Source: Leucoraja erinacea (lineage: Eukaryota). From it: DNA of 64,000 bases. A model generated the notes under the pieces. It ran no database searches and had not been told where the DNA came from. It saw nothing but the letters and a program-made list of their open reading frames with translations. Of this stretch, positions 2,131-50,942 are shown one piece after another (within the stretch, counting starts at the first letter, position 1; each line of letters starts with the position of its first letter). The stretch is from assembly GCF_028641065.1 (NCBI RefSeq), contig NC_073400.1, forward strand, positions 19,592,001 to 19,656,000, in the 5' to 3' direction. The position numbers and the translations under genes are program-made.

Positions 2131-2204
2131 CTACAGGGAGCATTTCAGCAGCATCAGTCCGAGAAGCAGTGGAAGCGGTGATCGAACTGTCCGCGATGAG
2201 GAGG
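2131..2204 (-). CDS. Gene C terminal coding exon: GPI-anchor signal
   Basis: Acceptor attctttccttttcag, phase 1. Encodes ASSSRTVRSPLPLLLGLMLLKCSL*: small-residue omega region, spacer and hydrophobic tail, with no cytoplasmic part. A donor AAG|GTAAAG follows at 2112. Confidence 0.8.
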
Positions 2205-3463
2205 CTGAAAAGGAAAGAATGGTCTTTAGTAGTGATCAAAGCAGTCATGGGAGGGTGGGAAAAAAGTTATGGCATAGGAGGAGGAGCGGTTTGGGCAGGT
2301 TATGCCGAGGAAGGATGGGTGGGGGGTTTGTCCAGATGGAGGAAGGAGTGGTGGGTTGGTGAGGTCTGCACCGCGGAGGTGACAGTTGAGGGGGTGAGGA
2401 TTCTGCGCCTAAGGTGAAGCGGGTGGATGGGTGGTTAAGTCCACCTTGAAGAGGGAGGAGTGTCCGTGGGGGGGGGGGGGGGGGGGGGGGGGGGGAGTGA
2501 GGTCTGTGGAGTTGTGGGAGGGGGAAGTCTTTGGCTTAGGCATGGGGGAACAGTTACAGGGTGTGGGGAAAAGTGGGTGAGGGAGAGAGGTGTGGAAGAT
2601 GTGGTGGCGGATGTGGGAGGTATGGGTGGGGGGGGTGGGCAAGGGGTGAGGAAGGGGCGTTTTGGGGGAGTGGCGTGTGGGGGAGGGAAGGCTGTGGGGG
2701 GGGTAGGGATGCGTCTTGTCGGAGGTGCGATTGGGTGACGGAGGTGCAAGGCGTGGGGGAGGCGTGGGGGAGGTGAGGGTGAGTGGGAGATGGACGAATG
2801 GTGGGGAGAGGCGAGTGGTGGAGGGGCGAGATGTGACTGGGTGGGCAAGGTACAAGGCTTGTTAGAGGGGTAGATGTGTGGGTGAGGTGCTGGGCATGGG
2901 CATGGGCGACTTGTTGCTGAGGCAGGGTGGGGAAGTCCATGGCAGCGGAGTGTCTGGTATGGACGGCGGCTCCAAATTTGGGGGAAAGGTTGGGTCAGAG
3001 TGGGGATGGCTGGATCAGACACTGAAGGACAATAGGACAGATACTCTGAGGGACTGAGGAAGCTAGAGTGTGATGGAGAATGATGTAGGTGCCAAATAGA
3101 AGTAGCAATGTGTAATGAAACAGAGGGACATGTAAGAGTTGTTTGGAATGATGGAATGTGGAGTTGGATAGAGGTAGGGAGATCAGGAGTGGGACGAAGG
3201 GAGCGATGTAGAGAGGGACAAAGGTAATGATGTGGAACAGGAGGGGTAAGAAAGGCAGAGAGCTGCAGTAAATGGAGGGTTCATAGTAGGTTGAAGAGAG
3301 GAGGACAGAGAGACATTTGACTTGTGTGGAGTGGAGGTGATCAGCGAGGTCGTCCAGTGGTGAGGATGGCAAGGTGGAGCTTGATAGCAGGAGGATATAG
3401 AGGCAGTAGCTTGGGGCTTTAGGGGCGGACTGGAATTGAGAGCGGGAATGCGCCCTGACCCAC

Positions 3464-3793
3464 CAAAAACATATAGCTGCATGTTCATGTAGATGCCTTT
3501 CCCTTTGCTAAACTTGGCTTGTAGGCTGTACTAGCCAGCGTCAGCTGCACGGACTGACTCCAGCATCAATGTGCCATTGTCGTACATATGCGCCCGATGC
3601 TTGTAGATACCATGGCATTCCAGCTCGTCAGGCAGGTTCCAGGTACAGATGACAGAGGGCAGGGATTTCGGCAACTTGCGGAAAGTCCATTGAAGGAAGG
3701 TGGGCGCCTTTTCCAGATGGACGGACAGGGTGGTATTGACGTTCACCCGACTACATCTGTAGTCATTGACCAATGTAGCTGCAGAGACTTGGC
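3464..3793 (-). pseudogene. Gene C duplicated Ig V exon (V2) with a single in-frame TAG
   Basis: Intact acceptor (ctcccag) and donor (G|GTGGGT), 330 bp. Aligns without gaps to V1 at roughly half identity. TAG at 3531-3533 replaces the TGG (Trp) of DxGWY. Confidence 0.85.
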
Positions 3794-3849
3794 CTGGGAG
3801 CAAGGGGGCGAAGTGAGCAAGGGGTGATAGTGTGGCATAGCAGTCTACC

Positions 3850-4520
3850 TATGTCCCCTACTGTCAACCCTATGCCCTGACAAACTCATGACCCAGCTAT
3901 CAGTGAGCCCAAAGCCTGACCCTAGACAGTGATAGAATGTCTCCTCATCGCAGGCAGTGACCCCAGCTTTTCACCCCAATCTCAGACTATGACTGGATCA
4001 TTACCCCAATCCCTCATAGCAACATTGGACCATTGATCCTGACTCTGGAACATGACTGTCACCCTTCACCCCAACACTCGACTATGACCCTGATTCCTTA
4101 CCTTGGCCAGTAACTGCATGCCAGAACCTTAAACCTGGCCATAGGCAGTGGCTACAACCTTCCTTTTATCTTCATCCCAAGAACCTGTCAACTCGTAGCA
4201 GACCAACAATGACCATGACCTCTTACTTTGAACTGGACAGTGATGTGCTCCCTTGCTGAATCCAGACAGTAGTATGACCCATCACACTGACTTCGGAGTG
4301 TTGTGACCCCCTCATCCCAACTCTGGATAGTGACACAAACCTTTCACCCTAATTCCAGACAGTTACATTCCTTACCCCAGCCCTGGATAGTGACATTATG
4401 CCTAATCCTGATGCAGGACAGCTACAGAACTCACCCTGATCGAAGTGATAGGACCCCTCGACCCCCAACCCTGGGTTGAGACAAGGTCGATCCCTCGCCC
4501 TAGTCATTACTTTGATCCAG
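3850..4520. repeat. Degenerate ~30-bp tandem repeat (..accctggACAGTGAcac..)
   Basis: Recurrent gacagtga/gatagtga units; paralogous to 5285-5915. Confidence 0.6.
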
Positions 4521-4936
4521 GACAGCAAGACAGAGGGGGGGGATTCAGCTGAGATTTGTGGATAAAGGATGTGAAAGTGGGACAGGGGGAAAGGATGTGG
4601 TGCACAACACAAGCAGAGTGAGGTGAGAGGGATGGCAGACATTGAAGGAAGTGCAAGGAGGAGAGGGGTAGTGATCAGGAGGATGAAGTTTGGATTAGGA
4701 TTAACTGACAAAATGTTGAGCAGTATATAGGGATTTTGAGCAGGATGGAGGGAAGGAATATGAGGGATGAGTAAGAGTGGGACAGGAGGAGGTTGACTGG
4801 CACAGTAAGTTGCCAGAGAGGCAGTGAGGTGGCACGGAAATAGAGAAGGGACCTTATGGCAGGAGACGGCAGAGAAGCAGTGGTTGGTGGGGATGGATGG
4901 GTTGAATGGGATGGAGGGAGATGCAGCCTCACCCAC

Positions 4937-5266
4937 CGAAAACATATAGCTGCACTCTGTGGTGGACGCCTTGTTTGTGGCTGAACATGGCATGGAGGTA
5001 GTACCAGCCGGAGTCAGCAGCACGGATTGAGCCCAGCAACAGTGTGCCGTTGATGTAGATGTGCGCCCGGTTCGTGTAGCTACCCCGGCACTCCCGCTGG
5101 TCGGGTAGGTACCAGATGCAGATGATAGAAGGTGTAGAGCGAGGCGATTTACGGAAGCTCCACTCCAGGAATGTGGGCTCCTGCTTCAGACTGACAGGAA
5201 AGGTGACTTTGGAGTCCAACCGAGCACATGCATAGTCCGTCGCAAGTGTGATGCCGTGGACCAGCC
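4937..5266 (-). CDS. Gene C exon 2: Ig V domain (V1), CD2/CD48-like
   Basis: Acceptor atcctcacgcccag, donor G|GTGGGT, 330 bp. Motifs KVTFPV, LEWSF, RAHIYINGTLLLGSIRAADSGWY and VQLYVF. Confidence 0.9.
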
Positions 5267-6539: not shown

Positions 6540-8380
6540 TATGACCCCACCTCTCCACTAAGCGCACCCCTGATCCATCCCATCTGACCATGACCCTTTC
6601 ACACCACTGACCCACATTTAGGTCTACCTACAGAACCCCATTCCTGACCCCTCCACTGATCTCTTCAACTCCCATCACTAATTTCTCATCTGACCCCCCC
6701 TCCTTCCCATGACTCTTCCTCTCCACTGACCTTAAATCACCCCTTCCTTTCCTTTCGGCTGACCCTACCACTTTTCCCTACCCGACCTCCCCACCACTGA
6801 AGCCATCCCCCAGACTACTCCACAACACTGACCGTGATTAGTGATGCCCTCTCCCTTCTCACCCTCACTCTTAACTCCTCCACTTTACCCAGATTCCCTA
6901 ACTCTCCCTGATTTCCTCCTACATCAACCCCCATCACTGACCCTTTCCACCTCTCTCCTTTCCCCCTGACCCCCACAATGACCCTTCCCCTCCACTGACT
7001 CTCTCCCCAGACCATTCCCATCCACTGATACCATCTTATATGATCACACCCCCCCCACCCTCATCGCTGACCCTCCCCCATTTCCTCCTCCCTTGATCCC
7101 CATATCTGATCCCTCTATTCCACTGACACCCACTGACCTCCGCACTCAAAAAACACCTCATCAAACCCCTCACCCACCCTCCCCCTGGCCCTCAATCCTG
7201 ACCTTTTTGCTAACTCCCATCTCTGACCCACCTCCCCTCCACTGATGTCCATTCCTGACCTCTCCTCTCCATTGACTCCACCACTGAACTCTCTTTTCCA
7301 CTGGCCCTCTTTTCCACCCTACCCAAGTCTCTCCTCTCAACTGGTTTCCATCCCTGACCATAATCTACCGAACCCCATTCCTGGCTCCACCACTGGCCCA
7401 ATCCTTGACCGTTCCCATGAGCACCACCCTAACCCTTCCACTCCTGACCTTCAGCCTTGACCCCTCATCTCCACTGAGCTCCATCTATATGACCATCTCC
7501 ATTGATCCCCTCCCATGTCCCACCCTTGACCTTCCCCACTCATCCCTATCCTTGACCTTCCTCTCCACTATCCCATGTATGACCCCCTACTCCACTGACC
7601 ATGACCGTTGACTCTTCCACTGAACACAATGTCAACCCCTCCCCTCCTCTGAACCCCATCCCTGTATCAACTCCTTCTCTGATTACCACTTGCTGATCCC
7701 CACACCTGATCCCTCCACACTGACCCTCCATCGACTCACTTCTTTGACACCTCTCTTCCACTGACACCCACCACTGGCTCACTCCCCACATCTGCTCACT
7801 TTATTCCACTGACCCCACGTTTGATCCCTTCCCTATATTTATCCCCACCCGCTGACACCACTGACCCTTCCCCACTGATGCCACCGTTGATCCCTCAACA
7901 CTGAACCTTCCCGCCCTCCCCTTCCACTGATATCCATCACTAACCCTGCCCAATGACCCCCACTACATCTGATCCACTTCTACTGACTGCATCCTTGACC
8001 CCTTCCCATTGTCCACCACCCGACTCTTCTGCTCCCTTACCCATACCCTTCAGTTCCCCATCCGATATTCTTACCGGTCTTCACTCATTGCCCCCCTCCC
8101 TCCCATCCCAGTCCCATTCCACCGACCCATACTGCTGGCCTTTCCCTGCTTTTCTGGACTTTCATTAACTCACAATCATGAACCCTTTAAATGACCCCTA
8201 CCCGTGACTCTCCAGACCCCGGTCCTCCCTATCCTCACTCCTTCCCTCCCAACGACTCCCACCTCTACACCTCCAGATGCCTACTCATGACCTTTCGCTA
8301 ACCCCCTACCCACTGACCCCCACCCCTCCTCACTCTCCACATCTCCAACCCTTGACTCCTTTGCTCCTCCCCACTCCCGG
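6540..8380. repeat. C-rich low-complexity degenerate repeat (ccactgaccc units)
   Basis: Repeated ccactgacc motifs and strong C/T strand skew. Confidence 0.6.
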
Positions 8381-8443
8381 GCTTCACTTGGCCCCACGGT
8401 AGTCACTCGCCGTGCACCATGCCCGCTCCACCTTACACCTTAC

Positions 8444-8492
8444 CGGCGCACAACGCCATGAGAACACAGAGGGCGGGGAAAGGGGCGGCCAT
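8444..8492 (-). CDS. Gene C exon 1: signal peptide MAAPFPALCVLMALCA
   Basis: GCGATGG Kozak context and donor CCG|GTAAGG (phase 1), within a CpG island. Confidence 0.87.
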
Positions 8493-8494
8493 CG

Positions 8495-8680
8495 CGCGGC
8501 GCCAACTGACAGCCCCGATGCCCCCGCGCCCCCGCGCCCACTCCCGCCTCCATCAACCAATGGGAAGCGCCCGCTCGGTCGGGCCAACGCCCTCCGGGGA
8601 TCCGCCAATCAGAGCCCGCTTTGGATCCGCTCGTGCCCACGGTTTAAACCGCTGCTTCAACTGTCGACGCTCGAGGGTGG
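8495..8680 (-). promoter_or_regulatory. CpG-island promoter of gene C with CCAAT and GC boxes
   Basis: CpG-dense from 8380 to 8710. AACCAATGGG, GCCAATCAGAG and CCCGCC motifs lie just upstream of the ATG. Confidence 0.7.
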
Positions 8681-9768
8681 AGATGGGATGGAGAGGAGAG
8701 GTCACGGGTGACCCCAGACCCCGACTCTCCCAAACTCCTCCCCAACTCTCCTCTCAACCATTAATTCCCACCGTCCTCAAATCCCCCCAATTAAAGGTGT
8801 CCTTCGCTCCATAGATGCTGCTGCACCCGCTGAGCATTTTTGTGTACCTTTGATTTTCCAGTATCTGCAGTTCCTTCTTAAACCCCTGATCTCTGATACA
8901 GATTAGCTCCAAATCCAAGATCCTAACTCAAATCCCAATCCCTAATGTAGAAACGAAAAACTGCAGATGCTGGTTAATACATAAAAAGACACGAAGGAGG
9001 GTCTAGGTCCGAAACATCGCCTATCCATGTTTTCCAGAGATGCTGCCTGATCTGCGGAGTTACGCCAACAATCTGTGTCCCGGATCCATAACCCCAGATT
9101 TTGACCCCTAACCCCAGACCCTGATCCCGAATCCCAGATCATGACTGACACAAACTCCAATCCTCAACGATAGACTCTGACCCCTAGCCCCAGTGTCTAA
9201 TCCCAATATCAGTTTAAAACCATAAACAATAACTTTGTGATCCCTAATCTAATCGATATGATGAATTTTAATCCCAGATTATGACCCTTAATCCCATCCT
9301 GGACTGACCAATAATTACAGACAAACTTTCCATTTCAGTTCTAGACCCCAACCCCTCATACAGACCCTGATGTCTAATTGCCAATGATTCCAGGCTCTGA
9401 CCCTAATCTAGCCAGAATCCTCACCTCTTGGTCAGGAGTATTTCAGCAGCGGACAGGCTGGGCAAATTTATGCAAGATTACTGACAGTCCTCCCACCCTT
9501 TGTGGACCAAAGAACATAATTTCCCATAGATATCATGCAGATACCTTTTTTCCAGAACATTAACATATCAGTGCAGCATTAGGCTTTCACTGTCCATCCC
9601 CTTCCGAGTCAAGACACTATTCAAGTTCAGAAATTATTTTTACTGGAGAAAGAGTACATCAGGTTCAAACAAAGAGTGCACCCGCACCTTTGAACTGAGC
9701 TAGGTTCCCACACCCTGCATCTCCCCTCCTCCTCAGTGATGGAGCAGGTGTAGAGGAGGTCCTCCACA

Positions 9769-11689: not shown

Positions 11690-11769
11690 TCATGAAGTTA
11701 CTTGGGTATTCTGAACAGCCACAACGGAGCTAAAAACCGGGTACTGGGACACTGGCGGACCGAACCAGG
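11690..11769 (-). CDS. Gene B exon 5: short cytoplasmic tail
   Basis: Acceptor ctttttccttccttag. Encodes AWFGPPVSQYPVFSSVVAVQNTQVTS*, followed by AG|GTGAGG. An alternative phase-0 donor CAA|GTAACT lies at 11702. Confidence 0.65.
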
Positions 11770-12166: not shown

Positions 12167-13784
12167 CAGTGGCTTGCAAAAGTATTCATACCCCTTGAAC
12201 TTTTCCACATTTTGTCTTGTTACAACCACAAACGTAAATGTATTTTATTGGGATTTTATGTGACAGACCAACACAAAGTGGCGCATAATTGTGAAGTGGA
12301 AGGAAAATGATACATGGTTTTCAAATTTTTTACAAATAAAAAACTGAAAAGTGTGGCGTGCAAAAGTATTCAGCCCCCCTGAGTCAATACTTTGTAGAAC
12401 CACCTTTCGCTGCAATTACAGCTGCAAGTCTTTTGGGGTATGTCTCTACCAGCTTTGCACATCTAGAGACTGAAATTTTTGCCCATTCTTCTTTGCAAAA
12501 TAGCTCAAGCTCAGTCAGATTGGATGGAGAGCGTCTGTGAACAGCAATTTTCAAGTCTTGCCAGAGATTCTCAATTGGATTTAGGTCTGGACTTTGACTG
12601 GGCCATTCTAACACATGAATATGCTTTGATCTAAACCATTCCATTGTAGCTCTGGCTGTAGGTTTGGGGTCGTTGTCCTGCTGGAAGGTGAACCTCCGCC
12701 CCAGTCTCAAGTCTTTTGCAGACTCTAACAGGTTTTCTTCCAAGATTGCCCTGTATTTGGCTCCATCCATCTTCCCATCAACTCTGACCAGCTTCCCTGT
12801 CCCTGCTGAAGAAAAGCATCCCCACAGCATGATGCTGCCGCCACCATGTTCCACAGTGGGGATGGTGTGTTCAGGGTGATGTGCTGTGTTAGCTTTCTGC
12901 CACACATAGCGTTTTGCATTCAGGCCGAAAATTTCAATTTTGGTCTCATCTGACCAGAGCACCTTCCTCCACACGTTTGCTGTGTCGCCCACATTGCTTG
13001 TGGCAAACTGCAAACAGGACTTCTTATGGCTTTTTTTCAACAATGGCTTTCTTCTTGCCACTCTTCCATAAAGGCCCGATTTGTGGAGTGCACGACTAAT
13101 AGTTGTCCTGTGGACAGATTCTCCCACCTGAGCTGTGGATCTCTGCAGCTCCTCCAGAGTTACCATGGGCCTCTTGGCTACTTCTCTGATCAATGCTCTC
13201 CTTTCCTTGCCTGTCAGTTTAGGTGGACGGCCATGTCTTGGTAGGTTTGCAGTTGTACCATACTATTTCCATTTTCAGATGATGGATTGAACAGTGCTCC
13301 GTGAGATGTTCAAAGCTTGGGATATTTTTTTTATAACCTAACCCTGCTTTAAACTTCTCCACAACTTTATCCCTGACCTGTCTGGTGTGTTCCTTGGGCT
13401 TCATGATGCTGTTTGTTCAATAATGTTCTCTAACAAACCTCTGAGGCCTTCACAGAACAGCTGTATTTATACTGAGATTAGATTACACACAAGTGGACTC
13501 TATTTACTGATTAGGTGACTTCTGAAGGCAATTGGTTGCACTGGATTTTATTTAGGGGTATCAGAGTAAAGGGGGCTGAATACTTTTGCATGCCACACTT
13601 TTCAGTTTTTTATTTGTAAACAAAATTTGAAAACCATGTATCATTTTCCTTCCACTTCACAATTATGCGCCACTTTGTGTTGGTCTATCACATAAAATCT
13701 CAATAAAATACATTTACGTTTGGGGTTGTAATGTGACAAAATGTGAAAAAGTTCAAGGGGTATGAATACTTTTGCAAGCCACTG
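12167..13784 (-). mobile_element. Tc1 (DD34E) transposon, Passport-like, full length but disrupted
   Basis: TA TSD and ~210-bp IR/DR-type TIRs (CAGTGGCTTGCAAAAGTATTCA). Transposase 13404->12384 begins MKPKEHTRQVRDKVVEK and has WSDETK / QQDNDPK-34-E motifs. It carries a +1 in an A-run and an in-frame TGA. Confidence 0.95.
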
Positions 13785-13937: not shown

Positions 13938-14075
13938 CTAGTCTGCTACGAAGGAACCATCTCATGTCCCTGCACCAGAACAAGAAGACGAAAAAGAACA
14001 GGAGGAATGTTAGGATAAAGCCAAATATACCGATCAGTATAAAGGCCCAGATTGGTAATGACTTCACATCAAACC
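13938..14075 (-). CDS. Gene B exon 4: transmembrane exon
   Basis: Acceptor ttttgcattgcag, donor TAG|GTAAGT, 138 bp, phase 1-1. Encodes GFDVKSLPIWAFILIGIFGFILTFLLFFFVFLFWCRDMRWFLRSRL. Confidence 0.88.
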
Positions 14076-16735: not shown

Positions 16736-18622
16736 CCTCTAAAACTTTCCTATCTATGTACCTGTCCAAATGTATTTTAAATGTTGTTAATCTGCCTTAA
16801 CTACCTCCTCTGGCTGCTCAATACATATACCTGCCACCTCTGTGTGAAAAAGTTGCAGGTTAGGTTTCTATTAAATCATTCCCCTCTCACCTTAAACCCA
16901 TGTCTGCTGGTTCTCGATTTCCCTACTCTAGGTAAAACACTGTGCATCTACCCTATCAAATCCCATCATGACCTTATACACCTCTATAGGATTACCCCTC
17001 CTCTGCTCCAAGGAATAAAGTCCCAGCCTGCCCAACCTCTCCCTACAGCTCTGGCTCTAAAGTCCTGGCAAAACCCTCATAAATCTTCTCTGAACTCTCT
17101 CCAGCGTAACACCATTTTTCCTATAACAGTGGCCAAAACTGAAATCAATACAGCCAACTCGCATTTTACGTGTGTTTAATTTTTACATTTTTGGAATAAC
17201 TCACTTGTTTAATTAATACCAAAGCTTAATTTACATGTTTGTATTTTTGAAATACCCTGTAACATATGTCTGGCAGCATCGTGGCCTGTGATGCCTGGCA
17301 AGGTACTAAATAGAACAACATTGACTCGCTGCCAAAGCCATCTTAAGTGTTTATTGACAATGTTTATTTAAGATTTATTTACTGTTAGTTTTTCCATATT
17401 AACTGTTTTTTTCCTTTATTAATGAGGAAGGTAAAAAAAATAATGGAGTCATACAAACTATTTATGCAGATTGTTATATGACTTTTCCCCTAACCTGTAA
17501 CATTTACAGACATTCTTACAGTAAAAATATGTTTAATTTACACGCTTTTGAGATACACGCTGCTTTTCCAAAATGCAACCCTTGTGTAAAATGAGAGGTA
17601 GCTGTACTCCAAAGTGGCCTCATCAATGTCATGTACAAATGTTACATAACATCCCAACTTTTATACTCAGTATGTGTAGGAAAGAACTGCAAATGCTGAT
17701 TTAAATCAAAGATATTTACAAAATGCTGGAGTAACTCAGTGGGAAAGGCATCATCTCTGGAGAGAAGGAATGGGTTCTCTCCACTCCTTCTCTCCTGAGA
17801 TGTTGCCTATCCCGCTGAGTTACTCCAGCATTTTGTGTCAATCTTCTATACAGTACCATGACTGACAAAAGCTAATGTGCCAAAAGCTGTCATGACCACC
17901 CTGGTTATCTATGATGCCATTTTCAGGGAACTATGTATCTGCACTCCTAGATCTACTTGCTCTACAACACTTCCCATGGTGCTGCTATTTACTATGAAGG
18001 TCCTGCCCTGGTTTGACTTCCAAAAATGCAACACCTCAGACTTAACTTCATTAAACTCCATTAACTATTCCTCATTCCACTTGTCAATTGATCAAGATCC
18101 TCCTCTACGTTTTGATAACCATCTTCACTAACTATGATACACCTGCTTACTAAAGCAAACTTACTAATCATTCCTTGTACATTGTCATCCAAATCGTTGA
18201 TATAAACCACAAACAGCAATGGGCCCAGCATCAATCCCTAAGGCATACCACTAGTCACAGGCCTTCAGTCCAGAAAACAACCTTCCATCACCCTCTGCTT
18301 CCTTCCATGAATCCAATTCTCTATCCAGTTGGCAAGCTCCCCCTAGATCCAGTGCGATCTCACCTTTCTGAGTAGCCTACCATGCGGAACCTTATCAAAT
18401 GCTTTGCATTGGACATAGACGCAGATGCTAGAATGAGGGGAACTGGTTAGGTCTCTGTTCCAAGAAGAAACTGAGGGCCAGAGGCCTTCCTGTTGAGAAT
18501 GGAAATGTAAAGGTATTGAAGAAAGTGAGAGGAATCAAAAGAAAAGTTGTTGTGGGACCATTTCCCTGCACAAATGCACAGATACTAACTAACAGCTGAG
18601 TTTGCTCTAGCAGTTTCTCTCC

Positions 18623-18653
<31 letters not shown>

Positions 18654-19941: not shown

Positions 19942-20226
19942 CTGTGCTGCAATCCCGTTTCAGGTTGACCTCCATGCTCTGCTTGCTGACAGGGTTGGAG
20001 ACGGTGCAGCGGTAGAGTGAGTAGATCATGGAATACATGGCGGCCGTGGAGACGGTGAGGGAGCTGCCTTTATTGGTGATGTTGTGCAGCTTGTCGGAGG
20101 TCAGCTCACAGCCGGCAGCCTGCCACATGAAATGCAGCCCATTGCCATGCGACACCTGGCAGTGCAGTATGCAGGCCCTGGAGTCCGCTGCTTGACTCAC
20201 CAGGATAGACACGTTCTTCACCGGCT
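19942..20226 (-). CDS. Gene B exon 3: SLAM/CD2-type Ig C2 domain
   Basis: Acceptor tattctgcctgtag. Encodes EPVKNVSI...CILHCQV...FMW...YRCTVSNPVSKQS...DC, the four-Cys pattern and NPVS motif characteristic of CD2/SLAM C2 domains. Donor CAG|GTCTGA, phase 1. Confidence 0.9.
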
Positions 20227-28991: not shown

Positions 28992-29037
<46 letters not shown>

Positions 29038-30430: not shown

Positions 30431-30495
<65 letters not shown>

Positions 30496-30543
30496 ACCCC
30501 CCCGTCAAACCACAGACTCGGACTGGGTGTCAGATCCACTCGC

Positions 30544-30711: not shown

Positions 30712-30743
<32 letters not shown>

Positions 30744-30756
30744 ATTGTATTTGGAT
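30544..30756 (-). CDS. Gene A exon 3: Thr-rich mucin-like stalk plus transmembrane helix
   Basis: Acceptor ctcattgcctgttacag. Encodes DPNTI(T)11NITTVPNKTTAHVSQR-VILLINLSLLGTLLISASTTILCLVW-RRAAGREVSSGTE and ends at a GC-type donor AAG|GCGAGT (phase 1). Confidence 0.85.
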
Positions 30757-32499
30757 CTGTAACAGGCAATGAGAACAGTTTTCGTGACTAATCCCATCCT
30801 CTCACTCCCAGTGACATAGGATTAGAGGATCCATCTCATCCAGCCTCAGGCTGGGAAAACTGTCATCCCAATTCCTTGCCTCAGTCCAACCCAATTAACT
30901 GATATCATTGCCTTCCATTCCCTCCCCACATTGTACTCCTCAGTCTTCTCAAATCTCTCCTCTCCATTCCCTCTCCTCCAATACCCATCACATCTACTCA
31001 ATGGATCTTCTATAGATAACCACAAGGACAGCCATGGTGTTGACAGATGGATTCGGCAGAATCTGCAATGGAAATTAAGGAAAAGAATTAACCAAAGCTT
31101 TATGTCTAACTTCACAAAGAAAGGCACAAAAAACGTCCAGAAATACTGGAGATACAGTGGTCAGCGTTACTGAGGAATAAAATAAATTGTATTAGTGAAG
31201 GGATATTCCGAGAAGTTACTGAGCCTGAACGCTGATAAATGCAACACTGTCCCTCAAGTTACCCATCTTCCCCAGCACCCTGTGCCACTGACTGTATCTC
31301 CACTGATGTTACTCCCACTCCCTCACATTTTTGACACAAGGAACTGCTGACACTTAATAAGCCCCAACCCGAAACATCACTTATTGAAATTCTCCAGAGA
31401 TGTTTTCTGACCTGCTGAGTTACTCCAGCACTTTGTGATTTTTGCAGCCTCATTCACTTTGTAACTGTGAATGAGGCTGCAAATTTACATTTCACATTTA
31501 TGCTCACTTCTCACACTGCAGACATGCTGTGGAGAACCTGCCCACATAACCCTGTTCCTTATTGACATCTGCACTAGGGAATGGTCATGTTGGAGGTGGG
31601 ACTAGCAGGGAGGGGTCCTGTCACATTGTTCAGTGAGGGGTCCGGTGCCATTGCTGTAGGGAGGGCTCCTGTCCCATTGTTCAAGGAGAGCTCCTGACAC
31701 ATTGTATTAGGGAGGGGTCCTGTCACAATGCTGCAGATGCCCTCACCTCCCCTGGATCCCAGGGAGCCTGTTGGAGGTGGGAGAGACCAGAGCAGCCCAT
31801 GTCCTTGTGGTACATTGTGGGGTGGGCATGCCAACTTCTTGCAGTGACAGCCAGCACGAGGACGAGGATTCAGTGTGGGGCATGGGGAATAATTCTGATC
31901 AAGCTGCAGCGAGACTGTGGACCGCTTTGTGCCCCCTGTCTGGTAATCCCACATCTCCATGGAGGAATCCAGGTGTTCCTGGAAAAGACAGGAATGGCTG
32001 CACCAAGGTCCAGCTGTGCATCGATTGCTGTTTGGAATGGACACTGTTTGTGGATCTATCTGTCTGCGCCACCCTCACAAATATGGGGATGGACCCAGAC
32101 GTGACTCCAATCGAGCAGCGCCGCTTCAAGGGTTTCCTCACTGGACTACTAACGGAGAGGAAGGCTATGAACATTTCCGCTGCTTCTTCACAGGAGTTAA
32201 AGTATTCTTGCCACGAAGATCATCACAGCCAACCTCAACAACAATGTCAGCAGGGGGTCTTTCTACAGGATTTGCAAACTCTCAGCCCAAGGATCGGGCA
32301 ACCCAGACCGTTCTGGAAGAACTCACCAAGCGACTGGAGTGGAGAGCCGGGTCACATGAGTCACTTTGTGTACATGCACTCCCCCCCATTCCCAGCATGA
32401 TACCCATAGCTTATTTTGAGAGGTGTCCACTCTCTTGAGCTCTAGCGATAGCAGAAGGTGTGTCATCAAAATACAGAGCGGATTAGTGCTCACGTAACA

Positions 32500-34280: not shown

Positions 34281-35235
34281 GTGTAAAGGAAATCTGTTAC
34301 CAACCGGTTGTCTCTCAGTCTCTCTATCTCAGATGGGATATCCGTCTCTCAGTCCCTCTATCTCAGAGGGGATATCTGTACACTGACTGGTGTCTCTCAC
34401 CAGTGGTATCAGGAAGCTGCCGCAGCTGGACTGGGGAGGACCAGGTCAGGTCGATTTGTCCCTGGTCTTGGCTCACTCACTCACTCCCTGTCACTGACCC
34501 AGTCTGGCCGTTCTGTCGTTCAGGACTCGGCCAGCTTGGGCTATCATGTGGAGAAAATGCTTGTAGTACAGTAGTGGGAATGTGGTACTTGTTCCCACAG
34601 GGAGTTGCTGCACTGATTCTCACTGAGGGATTTAAGGGGAGCTGGATCACCACACAGGGGAGAAAGGAACAGGTGGTTCCGGTGATGGGGAGGCAAGGGT
34701 GGACGTATGATTCTTTCTGCTCCCCGAGGGTGTGGATTCTTTGGAATTCTCTCTCCAGAGAGCAGTAGAGACTGAGCCATTGAATGTATATATTCAAAGC
34801 CGAGATGGAGTTTGGGTCAGGAAGGGTCAAGGGCTTGAGAGGAACAAGCAGGAAAGTGGAGCCAAGGCCAGGGTCAGATCAGGCCATCCTACCCCCAACA
34901 ATCCCCCCCCCCCCCCCCTTCCTTGAGGAGCCACCTATGGCCCCATCCCCAGCCATCAAGGCTGTGCTACCTGCCGATTCAGCCCCTCCTCTCGACCTCG
35001 GAGATACACGGTTCGATCCTTTGCGGCCCCTGGCCCAGTCTCCGGGGATGTGGTAAGTCTGTCCCCCAGCCTGGCACTGCCCCAGTCCCACTACACTTGT
35101 GCCGTGACCCCACTCTGGACACTGACAGTCAGTGGTGTTCAGTAAATTGGGGTACACGTAGGATTTGCCCTCACCCATTAATTAGGGGGGTTCAGGAGTC
35201 GGTGGGAGCCGGGCGTCCGCGGCAGTCACACTCAC

Positions 35236-35565
35236 CGTACACCTCCAGTCGAACTCTTGCCTGAGTTCCACGTCCTGAACTTGTAACAACATCCACCTCG
35301 TAATCACCAGCGTCCTCTCTCCGTAGACCACGGATTTCCAGACTGAAGTTCTCGCGGTGAAGTGTTACCCGTCCCGTGTAGTTGGTGGTATAGTATTCAA
35401 TATTCTCATTCGACTTCCAGTACGCTATCCTGGTTTTGCTATCTAGCTTCGCTATCCGCTTCCACACGACCTTGTCAACGTCCGATGTGACTGTGATCCC
35501 AGTAGGTAAGGAAACCGAGTGTCCCCGAGCTCCGGTCACGTTGGCAGCGGCGGCCCAAGTCCCAG
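35236..35565 (-). CDS. Gene A exon 2: CD2/SLAM-type Ig V domain with no cysteines
   Basis: Acceptor ctcttgtctcctcag, donor G|GTGAGT, 330 bp, phase 1-1. Motifs GHSVSLP, VVWK, GRVTL..ENFSLEIRGLRREDAGDY and RVRLEVY are typical of CD2/SLAM/CEACAM N-terminal V domains. Confidence 0.92.
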
Positions 35566-42820: not shown

Positions 42821-44255
42821 CATCTTCAATATTCTGCTAAACCTCCTCCACATCCTTCCTGTACAGTGGCTTGCAAAAGTATTCACACCCCTTGAACTTT
42901 TCCACATTTTGTCACGTTACAACCACAAACGTAAATGTATTTTATAGGGATTTTATGTGATAGACCAACACAAAGTGGTGCATAATTGTGAAGTGGAAGG
43001 AAAATGATACATGGTTTTCAAATTTTTTTCCAAATAAAAAACTGAAAAGTGTGGGGTGCAAAAGTATTCAGCCCCCCTGAGTCAATACTTTGTAGAACCA
43101 CCTTTCGCTGCAATTACAGCTGCAAGTCTTTTGGGGTATGTCTCTACCAGCTTTGCACATCTAGAGACTGAAATTTTTGCCCATTCTTCTTTGCGAAATA
43201 GCTCAAGCTCAGTCAGATTGGATGGAGAGCGTCTGTGAACAGAAATTTTCAAGTCTTGCCAGAGATTCTCAATTGGATTTAGGTCTGGACTTTGACTGGG
43301 CCAATCTAACACATGAATATGCTTTGATCTAAACCATTCCATTGTAGCTCTGGCTGTATGTTTAGGGTCGTTGTCCTGCTGGAAGGTGAACCTCCACCCC
43401 AGTCTCAAGTCTTTTGCAGACTCTAACAGGTTTTCTTCCAAGATGCCCTGTATTTGGCTCCATCCATCTTCCCATCAACTCTGACCAGCTTCCCTGCCCC
43501 TGCTGAAGAAAAGCATCCCCACAGCATGATGCTGCCACCACCATGTTTCACAGTGAGGATGGTGTGTTCAGGGTGATGTGCAGTGTTAGTTTTCTGCCAC
43601 ACATAGCGTTTTGCATTTAGGCCAAGAACTTCAATTTTGGTTTCATCTGACCAGAGCACCTTCCTCCACATGTTTGCTGTGTCCCCCACATGGCTTGTGG
43701 CAAACTGAAAACGGGACTTCTTATGGCTTTTTTTCAACAATGGCTTTCTTCTTGCCACTCTTCCATAAAGGCCCGATTTGTGGAGTGCACGACTAATAGT
43801 TGTCCTGTGGACAGATTCTCCCACCTGAACTGTGGATCTCTGCAGCTCCTCCAGAGTTACCATGGGCCTCTTGGCTGCTTCTCTGATCAATGCTCTCCTT
43901 TCCCGGCCTGTCAGTTTAGGTGGACAGCCATGTCTTGGTAGGTTTGCAGTTGTGCCATACTCTTTCCATTTTCAGATGATGGATTGAACAGTGCTCCGTG
44001 AGATGTTCAAAGCTTGGGATATTTTTTTATAACCTAACCGTACTTTAAACTTCTCCACAACTATCCCTGACCTGTCTGGTGTGTTCCTTGGGCTTCATGA
44101 TGCTGTTTGTTCACTAATGTTCTCTAACAAACCTCTGAGGCCTTCACAGAACAGCTGTATTTATACTGAGATTAGATTACACACAAGTGGACTCTATTTA
44201 CTAATTAGGTGACTTCTGAAGGCAATTGGTTGCACTGGATTTTATTTAAGGGTAT

Positions 44256-47200
44256 AGAAACATAGAAACATAGAAATTCAGGTGCAGGAGTAGGCCATTC
44301 GACCCTTCGAGCCTGCACCGCCATTCAATATGATCATGGCTGATCATCCAACTCAGTATCCCGTACCTGCCTTCTCTCCATACCCCCTGATCCCCTTAGC
44401 CACAAGGGCCCCACATCTAACTCCCTCTTAAATATAGACAATGAACTGGCCTCAACTACCCTCTGTGGCAGAGAGTTCCAGAGATTCGCCACTCTCTGTG
44501 TGAAAAAAGTTCTTCTCATCTCGGTTTTAATGGATTTCCCCCTTATCCTTAAGCTATGACCCCTTGTCCTGGACTTCCCTAACATCGGGAACAATCTTCC
44601 TGCATCTAGCCTGTCCAACCCCTTAAGAATTTTGTAAGTTTCTATAAGATCCCCTCTCAATCTTCTAAATTCTAGAGAGTATAAACCAAGTCTATCCAGT
44701 CTTTCTTCATAAGACAGTCCTGACATCCCAGGAATCAGTCTGGTGAACCGTCTCTGCACTCCCTCTATGGCAATAATGTCCTTCCTCAGATTTGGAGACC
44801 AAAACTGTATGCAATACTCCAGGTGTGGTCTCACCAAGACCCTGTACAACTGCAGTAGAACCTCCCTGCTCCTATACTCAAATCCTTTTGCAATGAAAGC
44901 TAACATACCATTCGCTTTCTTTACTGCCTGCTGCACCTGCATGCCTACCTTCAATGACTGGTGTACCAGGTCTCGCTGCATCTCCCCCTTTCCCAATCGG
45001 CCACCATTTAGATAATAGTCTGCTTTCCCGTTTTTTTGCCACCAAAATGGATAACCTCACATTTATCCACATTATACTGCATCTGCCAAACATTTGCCCA
45101 CTCACCCAGCCTATCCAAGTCACCTTGCAGTCTCCTAGCATCCTCCTCACAGCTAACACTGCCCCCCTCTTAGTGTCATCCGCAAACTTGGAGATATTGC
45201 CTTCAATTCCCTCATCCAGATCATTAATATATATTGTAAATAGCTGGGGTCCCAGCACTGAGCCTTGTGGTACCCCACTAGTCACTGCCTGCCATTGTGA
45301 AAAGGACCCGTTTACTCCTACTCTTTGCTTCATGTTTGCCAGCCAGTTCTCTATCCACATCAATACTGAACCCCCAATGCCTTGTGCTTTAAGTTTGTAT
45401 ACTAATCTCTTATGTGGGACCTTGTCGAAAGCCTTCTGGAAGTCCAAATACACCACATCCACTGGTTCTCCCCTATCCACGCTACTAGTTACATCCTCAA
45501 AAAATTCTATAAGATTCGTCAGACATGATTTACCTTTCGTAAATCCATGCTGACTTTGTCCAATGATTTCACCACTTTCCAAATGTGCTGCTATCCCATC
45601 TTTAATAACTGACTCTAGCAGTTTCCCCACTACCGATGTTAGACTAACTGGTCTGTAATTCCCCCCTTTTCTCTCTCTCCTCCCTTCTTAAAAAGTGGGG
45701 TTACGTTTGCTACCCGCCAATCTTCAGGAACTACTCTCCAGAATCTAAAGAGTTTTGAAAGATTATTACTAATGATCCACTATTTCTGGAGCTACTTCCT
45801 TAAGTACTCTGGGATGCAGCCTATCTGGCCCTGGGGATTTATCGGCCTTTAATCCATTCAATTTTACCCAACACCACTTCCCAGCTAACCTGGATTTCAC
45901 TCAGTTCCTTCATCTCATTTCATCCCCGGTCCCCTGCTATTTCCGGCAGATTATTAATGTCTTCCTTAGTGAAGACAGAACCAAAGTAGTTATTCAATTG
46001 GTCTGCCATGTCCTTGTTCCCCATGATCAACTCCCTGTTTCTGACTGCAAGGGACCTACATTTGTTTTAACTAATCTCTTTCTTTGCACATATCTATAAA
46101 AAACTTTGCAGTCAGTTTTTATGTTCCCTGCCAGCTTTCTATCATAATCTATTTTTCATTTCCTAATTAATCCCTTTGTCCTCCTCTGCTAGTCTTTGAA
46201 TTTCTCCCAGTCCTCTGTTATGCTGCTTTTTCTGGCTAATTTGCACGCATCATCCTTCGCTTTGATACTATCCCTGATTTCCCTTGTTATCCATGGATGT
46301 TCAATGTACCTTCCCTGATTTATTTCTTTTGCCAAAAATGGGATGAACAATTTTTGTAGTTCATCCATGCAGTCTTTAAATGTTCTCCATTGTATATCCA
46401 CCGTCAACCCTTTTAGAATTAATTGCCAGTCAATCTTGGCCAATTCACGTCTCATACCCTCAAAGTTACCTTTCTTTAAGTTCAGAACCATTGTTTCTGA
46501 ATTAACAATGTCACTCTCCATCCTAATGAAGAACTCAACCATATTATGGTCACTCTTGCCCAAGGGGGCACGTACAACAAGATTGCTAACTAACCCTTCC
46601 TCATTACTCAATACCCAGTCTAAAATAGCCTGCTCTCTCGTTGGTTCCTCTACATGTTGATTTAGATAACTATCCCGCATACATTCCAAGAAATCCTCTT
46701 CCTCAGCACCCCTGCCAATTTGATTCACCCAATCTATATGTAGATTGAAGTCACCCATTATAACCGTTTTGCCTTTGTCGCACGCATTTCTAATTTCCTG
46801 TTTGATACCATCTCCAACTTCACTACTACTGTTAGGTGGCCTGTACACAACACCCACCAGCGTTTTTCTGCCCCTTAGTGTTTTGCAGCTCTACCCATAC
46901 CGATTCCACATCCTCCAAACTAATGTCCTTCCTTTCCATTGCATTAATCCCCTCTCTAATCAGTAACGCTACCCCACCTCCTTTTCCTTTCTGTCTATCC
47001 CTCCTGAATATTGAATATCCCTGGATGTTCAGCTCCCAACCTTGGTCACCCTGGAGCCATGTCTCCGTGATCCCAACTATATCATAGTCATTAATAGCTA
47101 TCTGCACATTCAACTCATCCACCTTATTACGAATGCTCCTTGCATTGAGACACAAAGCCTTCAGGCTTGTTTTTACAACACTCTTACCCCTTATACAATT

Positions 47201-48557
47201 ATGTTGAAAGTGGCCCTTTTTGATTTTTGCCCTGGTTTTGTCTGCCTGCCACTTTTACTTTTCACCTTGCTACCTATTTCTTCTACCCTCATTTTACACC
47301 CCTCGGTCTCTACGCTCACACATTTAAGAAACCCTTTCCCTTTAACTCCATCCTCCACTATCCCATTCGACACCCCACCCCCCTTATTCAGTTTAAAGCC
47401 ACCCGTGTAGCAGTGGCAAACCTGCCTGCCAGAATGCTGGTCCCACACCTGTTAAGATGCAATCCGTCCCTTTTGTACAGTTCCCCCTTACCCCAAAACA
47501 GATCCCAGTGATCTAAGAATCTAAATCCCTGCCCCGTGCACCAGTTGCTCAGCCACACGTTCAGGTCCCGTATCTCCCTGTTCCTGCTCTCGCCAGCACG
47601 GGGAACTGGAAGCAAACCGGACATAACAACCCTGGAGGTCCTGCTTTTCAACATTTTTCCGAGCTCTCTATAGTCACGCTGCAGAATATTCATCCCCTTT
47701 TTTCCGACATCGTTTGTGCCGACATGCACTACCACTTCCGGATGTTCACCTTCGCCCTTGAGGATTTTCTGCACTCTGTCCGTGACATCCTGGATCCTGG
47801 CACCGGGAAGGCAGCACACCATCCTCGCATCCCGTCTGTTGCCGCAGAAACCCCTGTCCGTACCTCTCACGATGGAGTCTCCCACTACAATGGCCTTGCC
47901 TGCCTTAGGCCTTTTTGGTTTTGGCTCAACAGCCCTATTCGCATCACAGGCCAGTCCGCCGCTCACGTCTTCTGTCCCAACAGCTTCTAAGCGGATGAAC
48001 CTGTTTACAAGAGGTACACCACCCGGGGACGTTGGCATTCCATGCTTCCCTCCCTTTCTCACTGTTTCCCACCTTCTCTCTTCCAGTACCTTAGGTGTAA
48101 CAATCGTACTGTAGGACTTGTCAAGGAACGACTCAGTTTCTCGTACGAACCGGAGGTCATCCACTTGCTTCTCCAGTTCCCCAACACGGCCCTTCAGGAG
48201 CTCTACCTGGATGCACTTTTCGCATTTGTAGCAGCCAGAGGCACCAGCGGTGTCCTTGACCTCCCACATACTGCAAGCATCGCACTGAATCAGCTTGCCT
48301 GACATCTCCTTCTTTGGTCTCTCCCCCTCAAGCGTATTGCCTGGTCTCCTCGCCGAAGACTCTCGAGCCAAAGACTCACACTTTACTCACAGGGCACTTC
48401 CCTCACAAGGCCGCTCACTCACTGCCGCTCGCAAAGAGCTGTCCTGCTTAAATTGACTGATAAATTGCCTGATTTACCAATTTACAAAGCAAATTCCTCA
48501 GTTTTCAACTGTTTTCATCCCTCTCCTCCCACTTGGGCTAGAGCCAAGTGGGAGGAA
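44256..48557 (-). mobile_element. Full-length CR1 LINE (ORF1 plus APE-RT ORF2)
   Basis: (CATAGAAA)n tail, ORF2 pieces 47155->~44350 ([26 protein letters not shown]) and an apparent GTAT TSD. Confidence 0.95.
47388..48371 (-). CDS. CR1 ORF1 protein (zinc finger/leucine zipper plus SGNH/GDSL esterase domain)
   Basis: 327-aa open frame with CxxC..CxxC, a coiled coil and the motifs IVVGDSIVRG, VHVGTND and DGLHLN. Confidence 0.9.
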   Translation of the reverse strand: MARESSARRPGNTLEGERPKKEMSGKLIQCDACSMWEVKDTAGASGCYKCEKCIQVELLKGRVGELEKQVDDLRFVRETESFLDKSYSTIVTPKVLEERRWETVRKGGKHGMPTSPGGVPLVNRFIRLEAVGTEDVSGGLACDANRAVEPKPKRPKAGKAIVVGDSIVRGTDRGFCGNRRDARMVCCLPGARIQDVTDRVQKILKGEGEHPEVVVHVGTNDVGKKGMNILQRDYRELGKMLKSRTSRVVMSGLLPVPRAGESRNREIRDLNVWLSNWCTGQGFRFLDHWDLFWGKGELYKRDGLHLNRCGTSILAGRFATATRVALN

Positions 48558-49049
48558 GTATCAGAGTAAAGGGGGCTGAATACTTTTGCACGCCACACTT
48601 TTCAGTATTTTATTTGTAAACAAATTTGAAAACCATGTATCATTTTCCTTCCACTTCACAATTATGCGTCACTTTGTGTTGGTCTATCACATAAAATCCC
48701 AATAAAATACATATACGTTTGTGGTTGTAACGTGACAAAATGTGGAAAAGTTCAAGGGGTACGAATACTTTTGCAAGCCACTGTAAATAAGCGAGCAGTA
48801 CTACACACAAGACTCCATATGCAGCCTAACCAAAGTCCCATAAAGCTGTATCATGACTTCCTGGCTCTTGTGCTCAATGACCCGACTATGAAAGCAAGTA
48901 CACCATGTGCCTACTTTAGCACTCAATCTACTTGTGTTGCCACTTTCTGGACTCCTGGATCCCTCTTACATCAATGCTATTAAGGGTCATGCCAGCAATT
49001 GTATATTTTCTTCTTACATTCAACATTCCAAAGTGCAACACCTCACAGG

Positions 49050-49572
49050 ATTAAATTTGAGGAAGGACATTCTTGCTATTGAGGGACTGCAGCGTTGGTT
49101 TACAAGGTTATTTCCCGGGATGGCGGGACTGTCATAAGCTGAGAGAATGGAGCACCTGGGCTTGTGTACTCTGGAGTTTAGAAGTATGAGAGGATATCTT
49201 ATTGAAACACATAAGATTATGAAGGGTTTGGACACGCTAGAGGCAGGAAACATGTTCCCGATGTTGGGGGAGTCCAGAACCAGGGGCCACATTTTAAGAA
49301 TACGGGGTAAGCCATTTAGAACAGAGATGAGGAAACACTTTTTCACACAGAGAGTTGTGAGTCTGTGGAATTCTCTGCCTCAGAGGGCGGTGGAGGCAGG
49401 TTCTCTGGATACTTTCAAGAAAGAGCTAGATGCGGCTTTTAAAGATAGTGGAATCAGGGGATACGGGGAGAAGGCATGAACAGGGTACTGATTGGGGATG
49501 ATCAGCCATGAGTACACTGAATGGCGGTGCTGGCTCGAAGGGCCGAATGGCCTACTCCTGCACCTATTGCCA
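49050..49572 (+). mobile_element. CR1 3' fragment
   Basis: ORF2 C-terminal remnant and 3' UTR hairpin region. Confidence 0.85.
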
Positions 49573-49641
49573 ATTGACACCACGTGGGAGTATTTGAGGG
49601 GACAGTGTAGAGAAAATTTCCTTCTGTGCCCAACCTGTGCC

Positions 49642-50599
49642 TTTTAAAAAAACATTTAAAAATTACAAATACTTCTATTCAGAAAACTAAAACAAATATA
49701 CAAAATGGTAACACGAACAAAACTGCCTTTGTGGCAGTTTATAAAACAACAGTCATCAACTTTAAAATAACGTCATCCTGATCAGTAATACACTCGGTCT
49801 CCCGCGGCGACCAGTGTTCACGGGAAGGCCAGAGTCCCCGTCGACACCGCGTGTGTGTTCCCTCTCCAGGGACACGCGGGCACGGAAAAGTGGGAAGCAG
49901 CCAACCCCGACGTGGTCGTCGACTACCTGCTGCCTGGACCCGAGAATGGTCATCTTGTCCCTTGTCCCCTGGAGCAGTCCAACAGGGAGACCCCCCCCCC
50001 CCCCCCCCTCGCTCATGACCCTCCTCCCACTATACCAGATGCCCAAATCGCAGGAACGTGGGGCTAAAATTTAGCCAAAACGTGAGGAGCAGCCCCTTCA
50101 GAAAGTCGAACAGGGGCTGCAACCTCTCACACTCCATGTAGACATGGAAGTGACAGACAGCTGGTGAGTCCGTGAACCGGCTCAAGTACCTGTTACAGGC
50201 CACAACCTTGTGCAACATTCTCCACCCAGGTCCCCGATGTAAAGGGGGAGGACTCCCTTATAGAGAGACCTCCACTGGGTCCCGCTCCTGCTGTCAGGTC
50301 CAACCTGTGCCATTTTTTTTTACAAATTATTTTATTCATAAAACAAAAACCAACATACAGACTATTAACATGATCAAAGGCTGCCTATATTGGCAGTTTA
50401 CAAACAAGCAATCATCAAATTAATATATCACCAACTTTAACAATAATACACTCAACCTGCCGCGGCGACCAGCATTCACGGAAGGCCTCCAGAGTCCTCG
50501 TGGACGTGTGTTCTACTCTCCACCCCAGGTCCCCGATGTACAGGGGAAGGACTCCCTGATAGAGAGACCTCCACTGGGGACCGTTCCCGCCGTCAGGTC
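49642..50599 (-). mobile_element. Two tandem Tx1/L1-clade LINE 3' fragments inside the ~56-bp repeat
   Basis: LHxxVACNRYLSRF..HVYMECxRLQPLF and RARVSLEREH remnants with T-rich tails. CCAACCTGTG(C/T)C is repeated at 49630, 50300 and 50599. Confidence 0.8.
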
Positions 50600-50887
50600 C
50601 AACCTGTGTCCTGGGAGTGTGTGGGGACTCTATGGAGGGAGTTTCACTGTATCTAATCTGGGCTCTGGGAGTGTGTGAGGGGACGGTGTTGAGAGAGCTT
50701 TACTCTGCGTTTAACCCTTGCCCTGGGCGTATGTGACGGGACACTCTAGACGGAGCTTTCACTGTACCTAACTCATATGTTCTCCGCCTTGGGTGTGTGG
50801 AGTCCAGGGTTATACCAGCTGTGAATGTAATAAAGATGCCAGATAGAGGAAATTGAAACACAAAGATTTGCTTAGAAAAGAACTCAC

Positions 50888-50942
50888 GGACTGAGATGTG
50901 GAGAATCACCCAGGTACAGAGCAGCAGTTCCTCAGTGTGCAT
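50888..50942 (-). CDS. Gene A exon 1: signal peptide MHTEELLLCTWVILHISV
   Basis: ATG at 50942, 18 codons plus 1 nt, then donor C|GTGAGT (phase 1). Joins in frame to the V exon at 35565 to give ...ILHISVPGTWA-AAANVT. Implied intron is about 15.3 kb. Confidence 0.72.

Follow-up and report, generated by a model that had tools for sequence, protein, structure and literature searches.

In the CD2/SLAM family (SLAMF1-9, CD2, CD48 and CD58), the V domain lacks the canonical disulfide between strands B and F, each domain is encoded by its own phase-1 exon, and the genes are clustered in tandem. A short-tailed or glycosylphosphatidylinositol (GPI)-anchored member sits next to members with long signalling tails, and CD244-CD48 and CD2-CD58 are pairs of linked paralogues. 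Our literature search returned no paper devoted to the SLAM/CD2 genes that cartilaginous fish carry; otherwise there were database labels and one mention in a figure legend, which notes slamf genes in the elasmobranch major histocompatibility complex (MHC) (PMC10751288). Here we analyse 64,000 nucleotides of the skate Leucoraja erinacea (contig NC_073400.1, 19,592,001 to 19,656,000, forward strand), referred to as the window, whose own positions are used as coordinates throughout. A preliminary description of this DNA had read three same-strand genes in it, termed A, B and C here, and had proposed A as an inhibitory leukocyte receptor and B and C as its broadly expressed ligands. The family features just named (V domain, exon phase, tandem order and asymmetry of tails) recur in the window. 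Taken as a whole, the cluster is best explained as three tandem paralogues of the CD2/SLAM branch of the immunoglobulin superfamily, as modelled below, to which we assign a probability of roughly 70%.

Gene models and family placement

Genes A, B and C lie head to tail on the minus strand with gaps of ~3 kb, and the limits first given for the cluster, 2131 and 50942, are exactly the stop of gene C and the start of gene A. Direct reading and a scripted splice-site table both confirmed the arrangement and its consistent phases. Every acceptor is an AG behind a pyrimidine tract, and every donor is a GT except for a GC donor (aag/gcgagt) after the transmembrane (TM) exon of gene A. Relatives were searched exon by exon, not as spliced models, and exons were joined only to count frame and stops; the joined frames close without an internal stop at 251 residues for A, 291 for B and 150 for C, the last with its second V exon skipped. 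The exons are as follows, with the basis of each in brackets; ITIM and ITSM stand for immunoreceptor tyrosine-based inhibitory and switch motif, and proteins of other species are given by P numbers.

Gene A
50888 to 50942, minus strand: exon 1, leader MHTEELLLCTWVILHISV plus 1 nt, donor gtgagt (sequence reading)
35236 to 35565, minus strand: V exon, 330 bp, phase 1-1, no Cys (sequence reading, Pfam)
30544 to 30756, minus strand: exon 3, poly-Thr stalk from an (ACA)n repeat, TM segment and RRAAGRE, with GC donor (reading, tblastn)
30237 to 30325, minus strand: exon 4, ITIM IDYADL (reading; residues 191-226 of Mobula P0011 map here)
29325 to 29393, minus strand: exon 5, ITSM TEYAAV and stop (reading; residues 220-253 of P0011 map at 53% identity)
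Gene B
26285 to 26327, minus strand: exon 1, leader MEMATTLLQFVLWA plus 1 nt (matches MQLAATLLQFAVWA of P0021 and P0166)
25233 to 25562, minus strand: V exon, 330 bp, with Cys49 and Cys59 (71% to Hemitrygon P0021, 57% to shark P0023)
19942 to 20226, minus strand: C2 exon, 285 bp, with a CD2/SLAM-type Cys pattern (Pfam I-set 28.8 bits; 55-58% to P0021 and P0166)
13938 to 14075, minus strand: TM exon, 138 bp, ending WCRDMRWFLRSRL (67% identity to P0021)
11690 to 11769, minus strand: last exon, AWFGPPVSQYPVFSSVVAVQNTQVTS and stop (69% identity to the P0021 tail)
Gene C
8444 to 8492, minus strand: exon 1, leader MAAPFPALCVLMALCA plus 1 nt, donor gtaagg (upstream ATG gives normal leader length and good Kozak context)
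4937 to 5266, minus strand: V1 exon, 330 bp, intact (Pfam V-set 25 bits; AlphaFold2 model with pLDDT 85 and a V fold)
3464 to 3793, minus strand: V2 exon, 330 bp, with a TAG at 3533-3531 (sequence reading)
2131 to 2204, minus strand: tail exon, ASSSRTVRSPLPLLLGLMLLKCSL and stop, a possible GPI signal (splice site and frame alone)

All four V exons (one each in A and B, V1 and V2 in C) are exactly 330 bp long in phase 1-1 and lack the B-strand and F-strand Cys, as had been claimed; the V exon of A has no Cys at all, and those of B, C-V1 and C-V2 have Cys49 and Cys59 instead. A six-frame hidden Markov model scan of the 64-kb window found these four V-like segments and no fifth, and no flanking gene outside the immunoglobulin superfamily is present in the window. 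ATTAAA/AATAAA signals lie 3' of gene A at 28890, 28736 and 28682 and 3' of gene B at 11317 and 11313. The gene models first proposed were largely right, with corrections to B and C that are given below. The evidence supports tightly linked paralogues, a cluster that would have arisen by tandem duplication.

The family call was made from HMMER, HH and Foldseek scores; our V-domain tree contained no mammalian references, and its backbone is unresolved. In Pfam, the V domain of A (A-V) scored 47.5 bits for V-set and 31.6 bits for Receptor_2B4 (cutoff 21), and C-V1 and B-V scored 25 and 14 bits for V-set. As a single sequence against PDB, A-V matched CEACAM1 best (1e-7), followed by SLAMF5 (1.7e-6), with CD2 and CD48 also found. 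A profile of 15 A-type proteins matched a CD48/CD2 chimera (1.5e-12), SLAMF6 (1.9e-12), CEA (1.2e-11) and CD2 (3e-10). B-V and C-V1 gave weak matches as single queries; the B-family profile matched SLAMF6 over the whole V-C2 ectodomain (residues 26-218) at 8.9e-16 and CEA at 6.6e-16. In the Atlas, the stingray B orthologue has SLAMF6-like and SLAMF8 neighbours and, by structure, CD48-like (TM-score 0.62), SLAM, 2B4, Ly-9 and CD2 ones. The A-type and B/C-type profiles are themselves homologous (hhalign 97.7%, E 1.5e-12). A disulfide-less N-terminal V-set domain is encoded by four of the four V exons, a membrane-proximal C2 domain of the predicted two-disulfide type is encoded in B, with five Cys, and not in A or C, and an ITSM of the form TxYxxV occurs in the tail of gene A only (TEYAAV, last exon). 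The Pfam, PDB-profile, Atlas and hhalign results bear out the CD2/SLAM-like identity that had been suggested. At the level of sequence comparison, they support the membership of A, B and C in the CD2/SLAM superfamily, with CEACAM as a near rival.

Under that rival, A would be an ITIM/ITSM receptor resembling CEACAM1, with B and C as relatives of the CEACAM N domain. Besides the leading place of CEACAM1 among the single-sequence matches of A-V and the CEA score of the B profile, CEACAM N domains are the only PDB sequence matches of C-V1 (0.0075-0.04), frog and bird CEACAM5-like proteins are among the library matches, and CEACAMs have been reported from cartilaginous fish (PMC5112662). However, matches that cover the full ectodomain in a single stretch prefer SLAMF6, CD48 and CD2 over CEACAM, A-V passes the Pfam cutoff for Receptor_2B4, and the C2 domain of B aligns to SLAMF6 with both extra cysteines. 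By structure, nearly every neighbour of the B orthologue is a CD2/SLAM cluster, and the A-type V domains fall outside the CEACAM-like rows of the tree, though on the backbone described above. We consider a CEACAM origin of the cluster unlikely.

A further alternative concerns gene B, which could be the elasmobranch counterpart of LY6G6F and not a SLAM gene. LY6G6F is an immunoglobulin protein encoded in MHC class III, with a short tyrosine-bearing tail and a layout similar to that of B. Its cluster came second in the Atlas feature search (0.97) and holds proteins of ~299 residues, compared with 291 for B; in addition, the shark MHC contains genes labelled slamf (PMC10751288). Yet ten of ten structure neighbours and nine feature matches are CD2/SLAM/CEACAM clusters. 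The tail of B also carries YPVF and not the YxN motif of LY6G6F, and this alternative is very improbable. LY6G6F and VSIG10L2 are both leads from Atlas labels, and LY6G6F was compared through Atlas neighbours and tail motif.

Gene A and its relatives in rays and skates

Gene A would encode a type I protein with a disulfide-less V domain, a poly-Thr stalk, a TM segment and a tail with ITIM and ITSM. Its exons and both tyrosine motifs, read directly, give the layout first proposed. IDYADL and TEYAAV are 36 residues apart, C-terminal to a TM segment of 26 residues, and the tail follows the pattern (S/I/V/L)xYxx(I/V/L) and then TxYxx(V/I). The inhibitory-type tail that had been proposed is thus present in its motifs. 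Judged from these, the phosphorylated tyrosines would recruit SHP-type phosphatases and/or SAP-type adaptors and so damp leukocyte activation. Exon 3 is 50-56% identical to P0005, P0011 and P0012 by tblastn. With family C2 domains as tblastn queries, no C2 exon was found in the 4.5-kb second intron of A, and the exon of B was the only one in the whole window. Five candidates 5' of A-V combine an ATG, phase 1 and a hydrophobic stretch; the leader given above is the sole one with a strong donor. It is similar by eye to the leaders of P0002 and P0005, and a short-query tblastn with it returned only noise.

Reading through the GC donor leads to a protein that ends in GEWI and a stop. Because this end resembles the annotated C-terminus ...SKWM of Hypanus P0005, together with the TM-exon match of Mobula P0012, a pair of short-tail and long-tail isoforms of gene A is likely on sequence grounds. 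Because the GC donor that follows the TM exon is weak, it would permit the short-tailed isoform, which would be devoid of ITIM and ITSM.

A G-tract of 72 nt (30432-30503, minus strand) starts ~40 nt 3' of this donor. G-runs near donors can serve as intronic splicing enhancers, and the tract might tune the ratio of short-tailed to long-tailed A. Further long G-runs lie at 28985-29130, 18610-18650 and 34900-34920. The poly-Thr stalk is encoded by an (ACA)n microsatellite (window 30710-30745), so that its length may differ between alleles; it is probably O-glycosylated. Equivalent poly-Thr stalks are present in Hemitrygon P0006 and Mobula P0007. Intron 4 of A contains a minisatellite of ~19-bp units (CTCCCCTGTACACTCCCCA-like, 29760-30000), which produces spurious long Pro/Ser-rich open reading frames (ORFs) on both strands.

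Databases already contain predicted, unstudied relatives of both A and B. The preliminary statement that the architectures could not be matched to named genes was therefore overstated: the layout of A is annotated in Mobula, and B has annotated orthologues. A-V shares 70% identity with a "SLAM family member 5-like" protein of Rhinoraja; for Amblyraja, the figure is 65-66%, with proteins named either in the same way or "Ly-9-like". These relatives are V-C2 proteins. The design of A (V, Thr-rich stalk, TM, two tyrosine motifs) is also found in Mobula P0011 and P0007, Hemitrygon P0006 and Hypanus P0013. Mobula P0011 ("CD48 antigen-like", 255 residues, V-stalk-TM-TVYANI-TVYAAV) maps onto all four A exons downstream of the leader. 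These ray proteins have in common with A the RRRAAG(K/R)E after the TM segment, one motif that reads TEYAAV or TVYAAV, and a Thr-rich or short stalk. In contrast, their V identity to A is just 43-51%, and their first motif is TxYxxI, whereas A has a true ITIM, IDYADL. Unlike the ray V-stalk proteins, A-V clusters with the skate V-C2 paralogues P0002-P0004.

In the tree, the A-type V domains form one clade (support 97/87), with the skate sequences grouped within it (100/97). Across P0002-P0016, these domains cluster by lineage, skates versus stingrays and mantas, whatever the architecture (V-C2 or V-only). This clustering by lineage and not by architecture points to an expansion within each lineage, to gene conversion or to exon shuffling. 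Gene A belongs to this "SLAMF-like" expansion of rays and skates. In Hypanus, there is a hint that the A-type P0005 and the B-type P0166 are placed on the same chromosome.

Genes B and C: conservation, promoters and decay

The V-C2-TM layout proposed for gene B was confirmed, but a fifth coding exon had been missed, and with it a cytoplasmic tail of 38 residues. The tail carries YPVF, a YxxPhi-type motif, and no ITIM or ITSM. SLAMF8/9 and CD48 likewise have no ITSM, and SLAMF8/9 and the TM form of CD58 share the V-C2-TM-short-tail layout of B. The C2 domain of B has five Cys, and that of its orthologue aligns to SLAMF6 with both extra cysteines included. An exhaustive profile search identified as orthologues P0021 (Hemitrygon, "SLAM-like"), P0166 (Hypanus, "2B4-like") and P0023 (Hemiscyllium, a shark; partial). 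P0021 and P0166 (293 residues) map onto all five B exons. The V domain of B is 71% identical to this group, C2 is 55-58% identical and the TM segment 67%, and the QYPVF tail motif is kept. These proteins are unstudied machine predictions, and skate B departs from them in the last ~15 residues. Since the B clade is supported at 100/99 and its topology is that of the species tree, gene B reads as an old gene that evolves slowly and is kept as one orthologous copy in sharks and rays. Intron 4 of B holds a Tc1/mariner transposase ORF of 269 residues.

Cys49 and Cys59 are invariant in seven of seven B/C-type V domains in the alignment, ray and shark copies included. In the AlphaFold2 model of C-V1 (pLDDT 85), whose best solved matches are JAML, 2B4, nectin-1 and CD48, the two residues are in register on neighbouring strands, C' (46-52) and C'' (56-59). 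From this model, it is plausible that a cross-strand C'-C'' disulfide replaces the canonical B-F one in V domains of the B/C type. The C'-C'' face belongs to the sheet by which CD2/SLAM proteins bind. A conserved B lineage, with C as its relative, would then have exchanged the lost canonical disulfide for a predicted staple on the binding sheet.

The promoters of B and C had been described as of the CpG/CCAAT type and that of A as not. Two features are relevant here.

8301 to 8800, no strand assigned: CpG island with two CCAAT boxes (8557, 8605) over the 5' end of C (GC 0.67, CpG observed/expected up to 0.98)
26371 to 26490, no strand assigned: five CCAAT/ATTGG boxes upstream of B, the densest CCAAT cluster in the window

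At 8401-8700, the CpG observed/expected ratio is 0.98, compared with 0.35 for the whole window, and a small CpG-rich patch upstream of B (26201-26500) reaches 0.79. Thus B and C do have both elements. The contrast with A holds only for the CpG island, which is absent there; the upstream region of A also has three CCAAT/ATTGG motifs. An 11-mer, CTCTGATTGGC, a strong NF-Y-type inverted CCAAT, is common to the B (~26430) and C (~8610) promoters, and an alignment of the two found nothing else in common.

Gene C would be a divergent relative of B, whose short hydrophobic C-terminus could be a GPI signal. Of its two V exons, V1 is intact and V2 appears to be in decay. B and C group weakly in the V-domain tree, and C-V1 and C-V2 join P0052, a hypothetical protein of 130 residues from a bamboo shark (support 97/88). 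A homologue search with C-V1 and B-V as queries returned only the window's own unspliced ORFs. The V(-V)-GPI layout first given for C survives only in part: the exons are present, but V2 carries a TAG, and the tail (ASSS-RTVRSP-LPLLLGLMLLKCSL) is a loose fit to a GPI signal, its hydrophobic core being no longer than 10 residues. The leader exon was likewise found, with a better start at the in-frame ATG 8492 (16 residues) than at ATG 8459 (5 residues), from which it had been read. The TAG of C-V2 falls at the conserved Trp and is the one stop, with no indel. C-V1 and C-V2 are 54-55% identical in amino acids with a dN/dS (nonsynonymous to synonymous substitution ratio) of 0.45, and the tree places all change since their duplication on the V2 branch (0.76, versus 0 for V1).

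Several results weigh against the three-gene CD2/SLAM reading. CEACAM scores nearly match those of CD2/SLAM, and profile similarity does not separate the two families. The leader of A lies 15.3 kb upstream and is backed by motif logic only. RNA data on 25200-31199 (two oligo-dT RNA-seq runs from unlabelled tissue, 5% of each sampled, and two contig sets) gave zero read depth on exons 1-2 of B and exons 3-5 of A and no splice junctions; RNA-seq depth was seen only on transposon-derived repeats at 26400-28400. In gene C, V2 retains good splice sites, so that a transcript including it would code for a shortened protein and would probably be degraded by nonsense-mediated decay, and the tail exon is supported by frame and splice site only. 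Protein-library searches found no close C orthologue, the nearest protein being P0052 at 32-35% identity.

For gene C, the same evidence raises the possibility of a decaying duplicate, a pseudogene or one in the making, instead of a working GPI-anchored ligand. A stop at a conserved Trp in a domain that can still be spliced in, change confined to the V2 branch, two protein searches that yielded no orthologue save the distant shark protein, and a tail with so short a hydrophobic core would all fit decay. On the other side, C-V1 is intact, with consensus splice sites and a confidently modelled V fold, the dN/dS between the two domains has the value given above, the CpG island and the leader are intact, and the TAG could be recent or allelic. 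We regard decay of gene C as quite possible, at somewhat less than even odds.

The blank RNA-seq, with zero depth on the leader and V exon of B, also speaks against the broad expression that had been proposed for this gene. It is weak evidence against housekeeping-level expression of B and says nothing about immune tissues. The RNA-seq reads matched transposons and CR1-like tails (FTQRVVNLWNSLPQ). Transposons occupy introns and flanks of the cluster (12384-13193, 43082-43890, 44334-48371 and 54691-57314); among them are a broken Tc1/mariner copy in intron 1 of A and LINE (long interspersed nuclear element) copies on both strands, with an esterase-like ORF1 and reverse transcriptase. A run of 156 N (58142-58297) is flanked by (TG/TA)-rich simple repeats.

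A possible receptor-ligand set and the known systems

The preliminary description held that A is an inhibitory leukocyte receptor for the linked, broadly expressed B and/or C, a self-marker pair in the manner of 2B4-CD48 or CD2-CD58. Consistent with this, A has ITIM and ITSM, B and C have no such motif, C may be lipid-anchored, and the three genes are only ~3 kb apart. B-V is strongly conserved (71% between skate and stingray), as for a fixed ligand, while A-type V domains diversify by lineage, and B and C have CpG/CCAAT 5' ends. CD244 binds CD48 (PMC4718992) and CD2 binds CD58 (PMC8218816). Against this stand the blank of both bulk RNA-seq runs on the B exons, a result at odds with housekeeping expression, the CCAAT boxes that lie upstream of A too, the possible loss of function of gene C, and the self-binding of most SLAM receptors. 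A complex prediction of A-V with B-V scored 0.00 against a mark of 0.34, with the supplied alignments unused, and speaks neither for nor against binding. Since most SLAM-family members are self-ligands (PMC4718992), we take self-binding as the default by analogy. We conclude that a role of A as receptor for B and/or C is doubtful.

The analogy with CD244-CD48 and CD2-CD58 is nonetheless a fair one, in view of the asymmetry of the tails, the tight linkage, the conserved B and the diversifying A-type V domains. A more specific version, in which A and B (perhaps with C) form an ancient heterophilic checkpoint pair and a diversifying V-only ITIM/ITSM receptor reads a conserved, disulfide-stapled SLAM-type ligand, is a shade less probable again. 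If it were true, the pair would be the elasmobranch counterpart of 2B4-CD48 or SIRPa-CD47, possibly MHC-linked. Binding among A, B and C, if true, would mean that linked receptor-ligand pairs in this family go back to the base of the jawed vertebrates.

At present, the analysis amounts to a careful annotation of a known family, with exact gene models for three linked members of SLAM/CD2 type. With the SLAM family, B shares the V-C2 ectodomain with a four-cysteine C2, and A shares the ITSM TxYxxV. The differences are that A and C have no C2 domain, that A pairs an ITIM with a single ITSM, and that the C'-C'' Cys pair of B and C is not seen in the family members compared; no 1:1 orthologue of A, B or C among mammalian SLAM members emerged here. 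The N-terminal V domain of CEACAM1 is also disulfide-less. CEACAM1 has in addition an ITIM/ITSM tail like that of A (PMC5112662), isoforms with long and short tails (PMC11646291) and scores near those of SLAM. However, it has C2-type domains after its N domain, and the whole-ectodomain and structural matches of the cluster prefer CD2/SLAM. PD-1 has the layout of A (single V, stalk, TM, ITIM and ITSM), but its V domain is of the CD28 type with the canonical disulfide, and A showed no sequence affinity to PD-1 in any search made. In rays and skates, V domains of SLAM type are thus combined with a PD-1-like layout of a single V domain, an ITIM and an ITSM.

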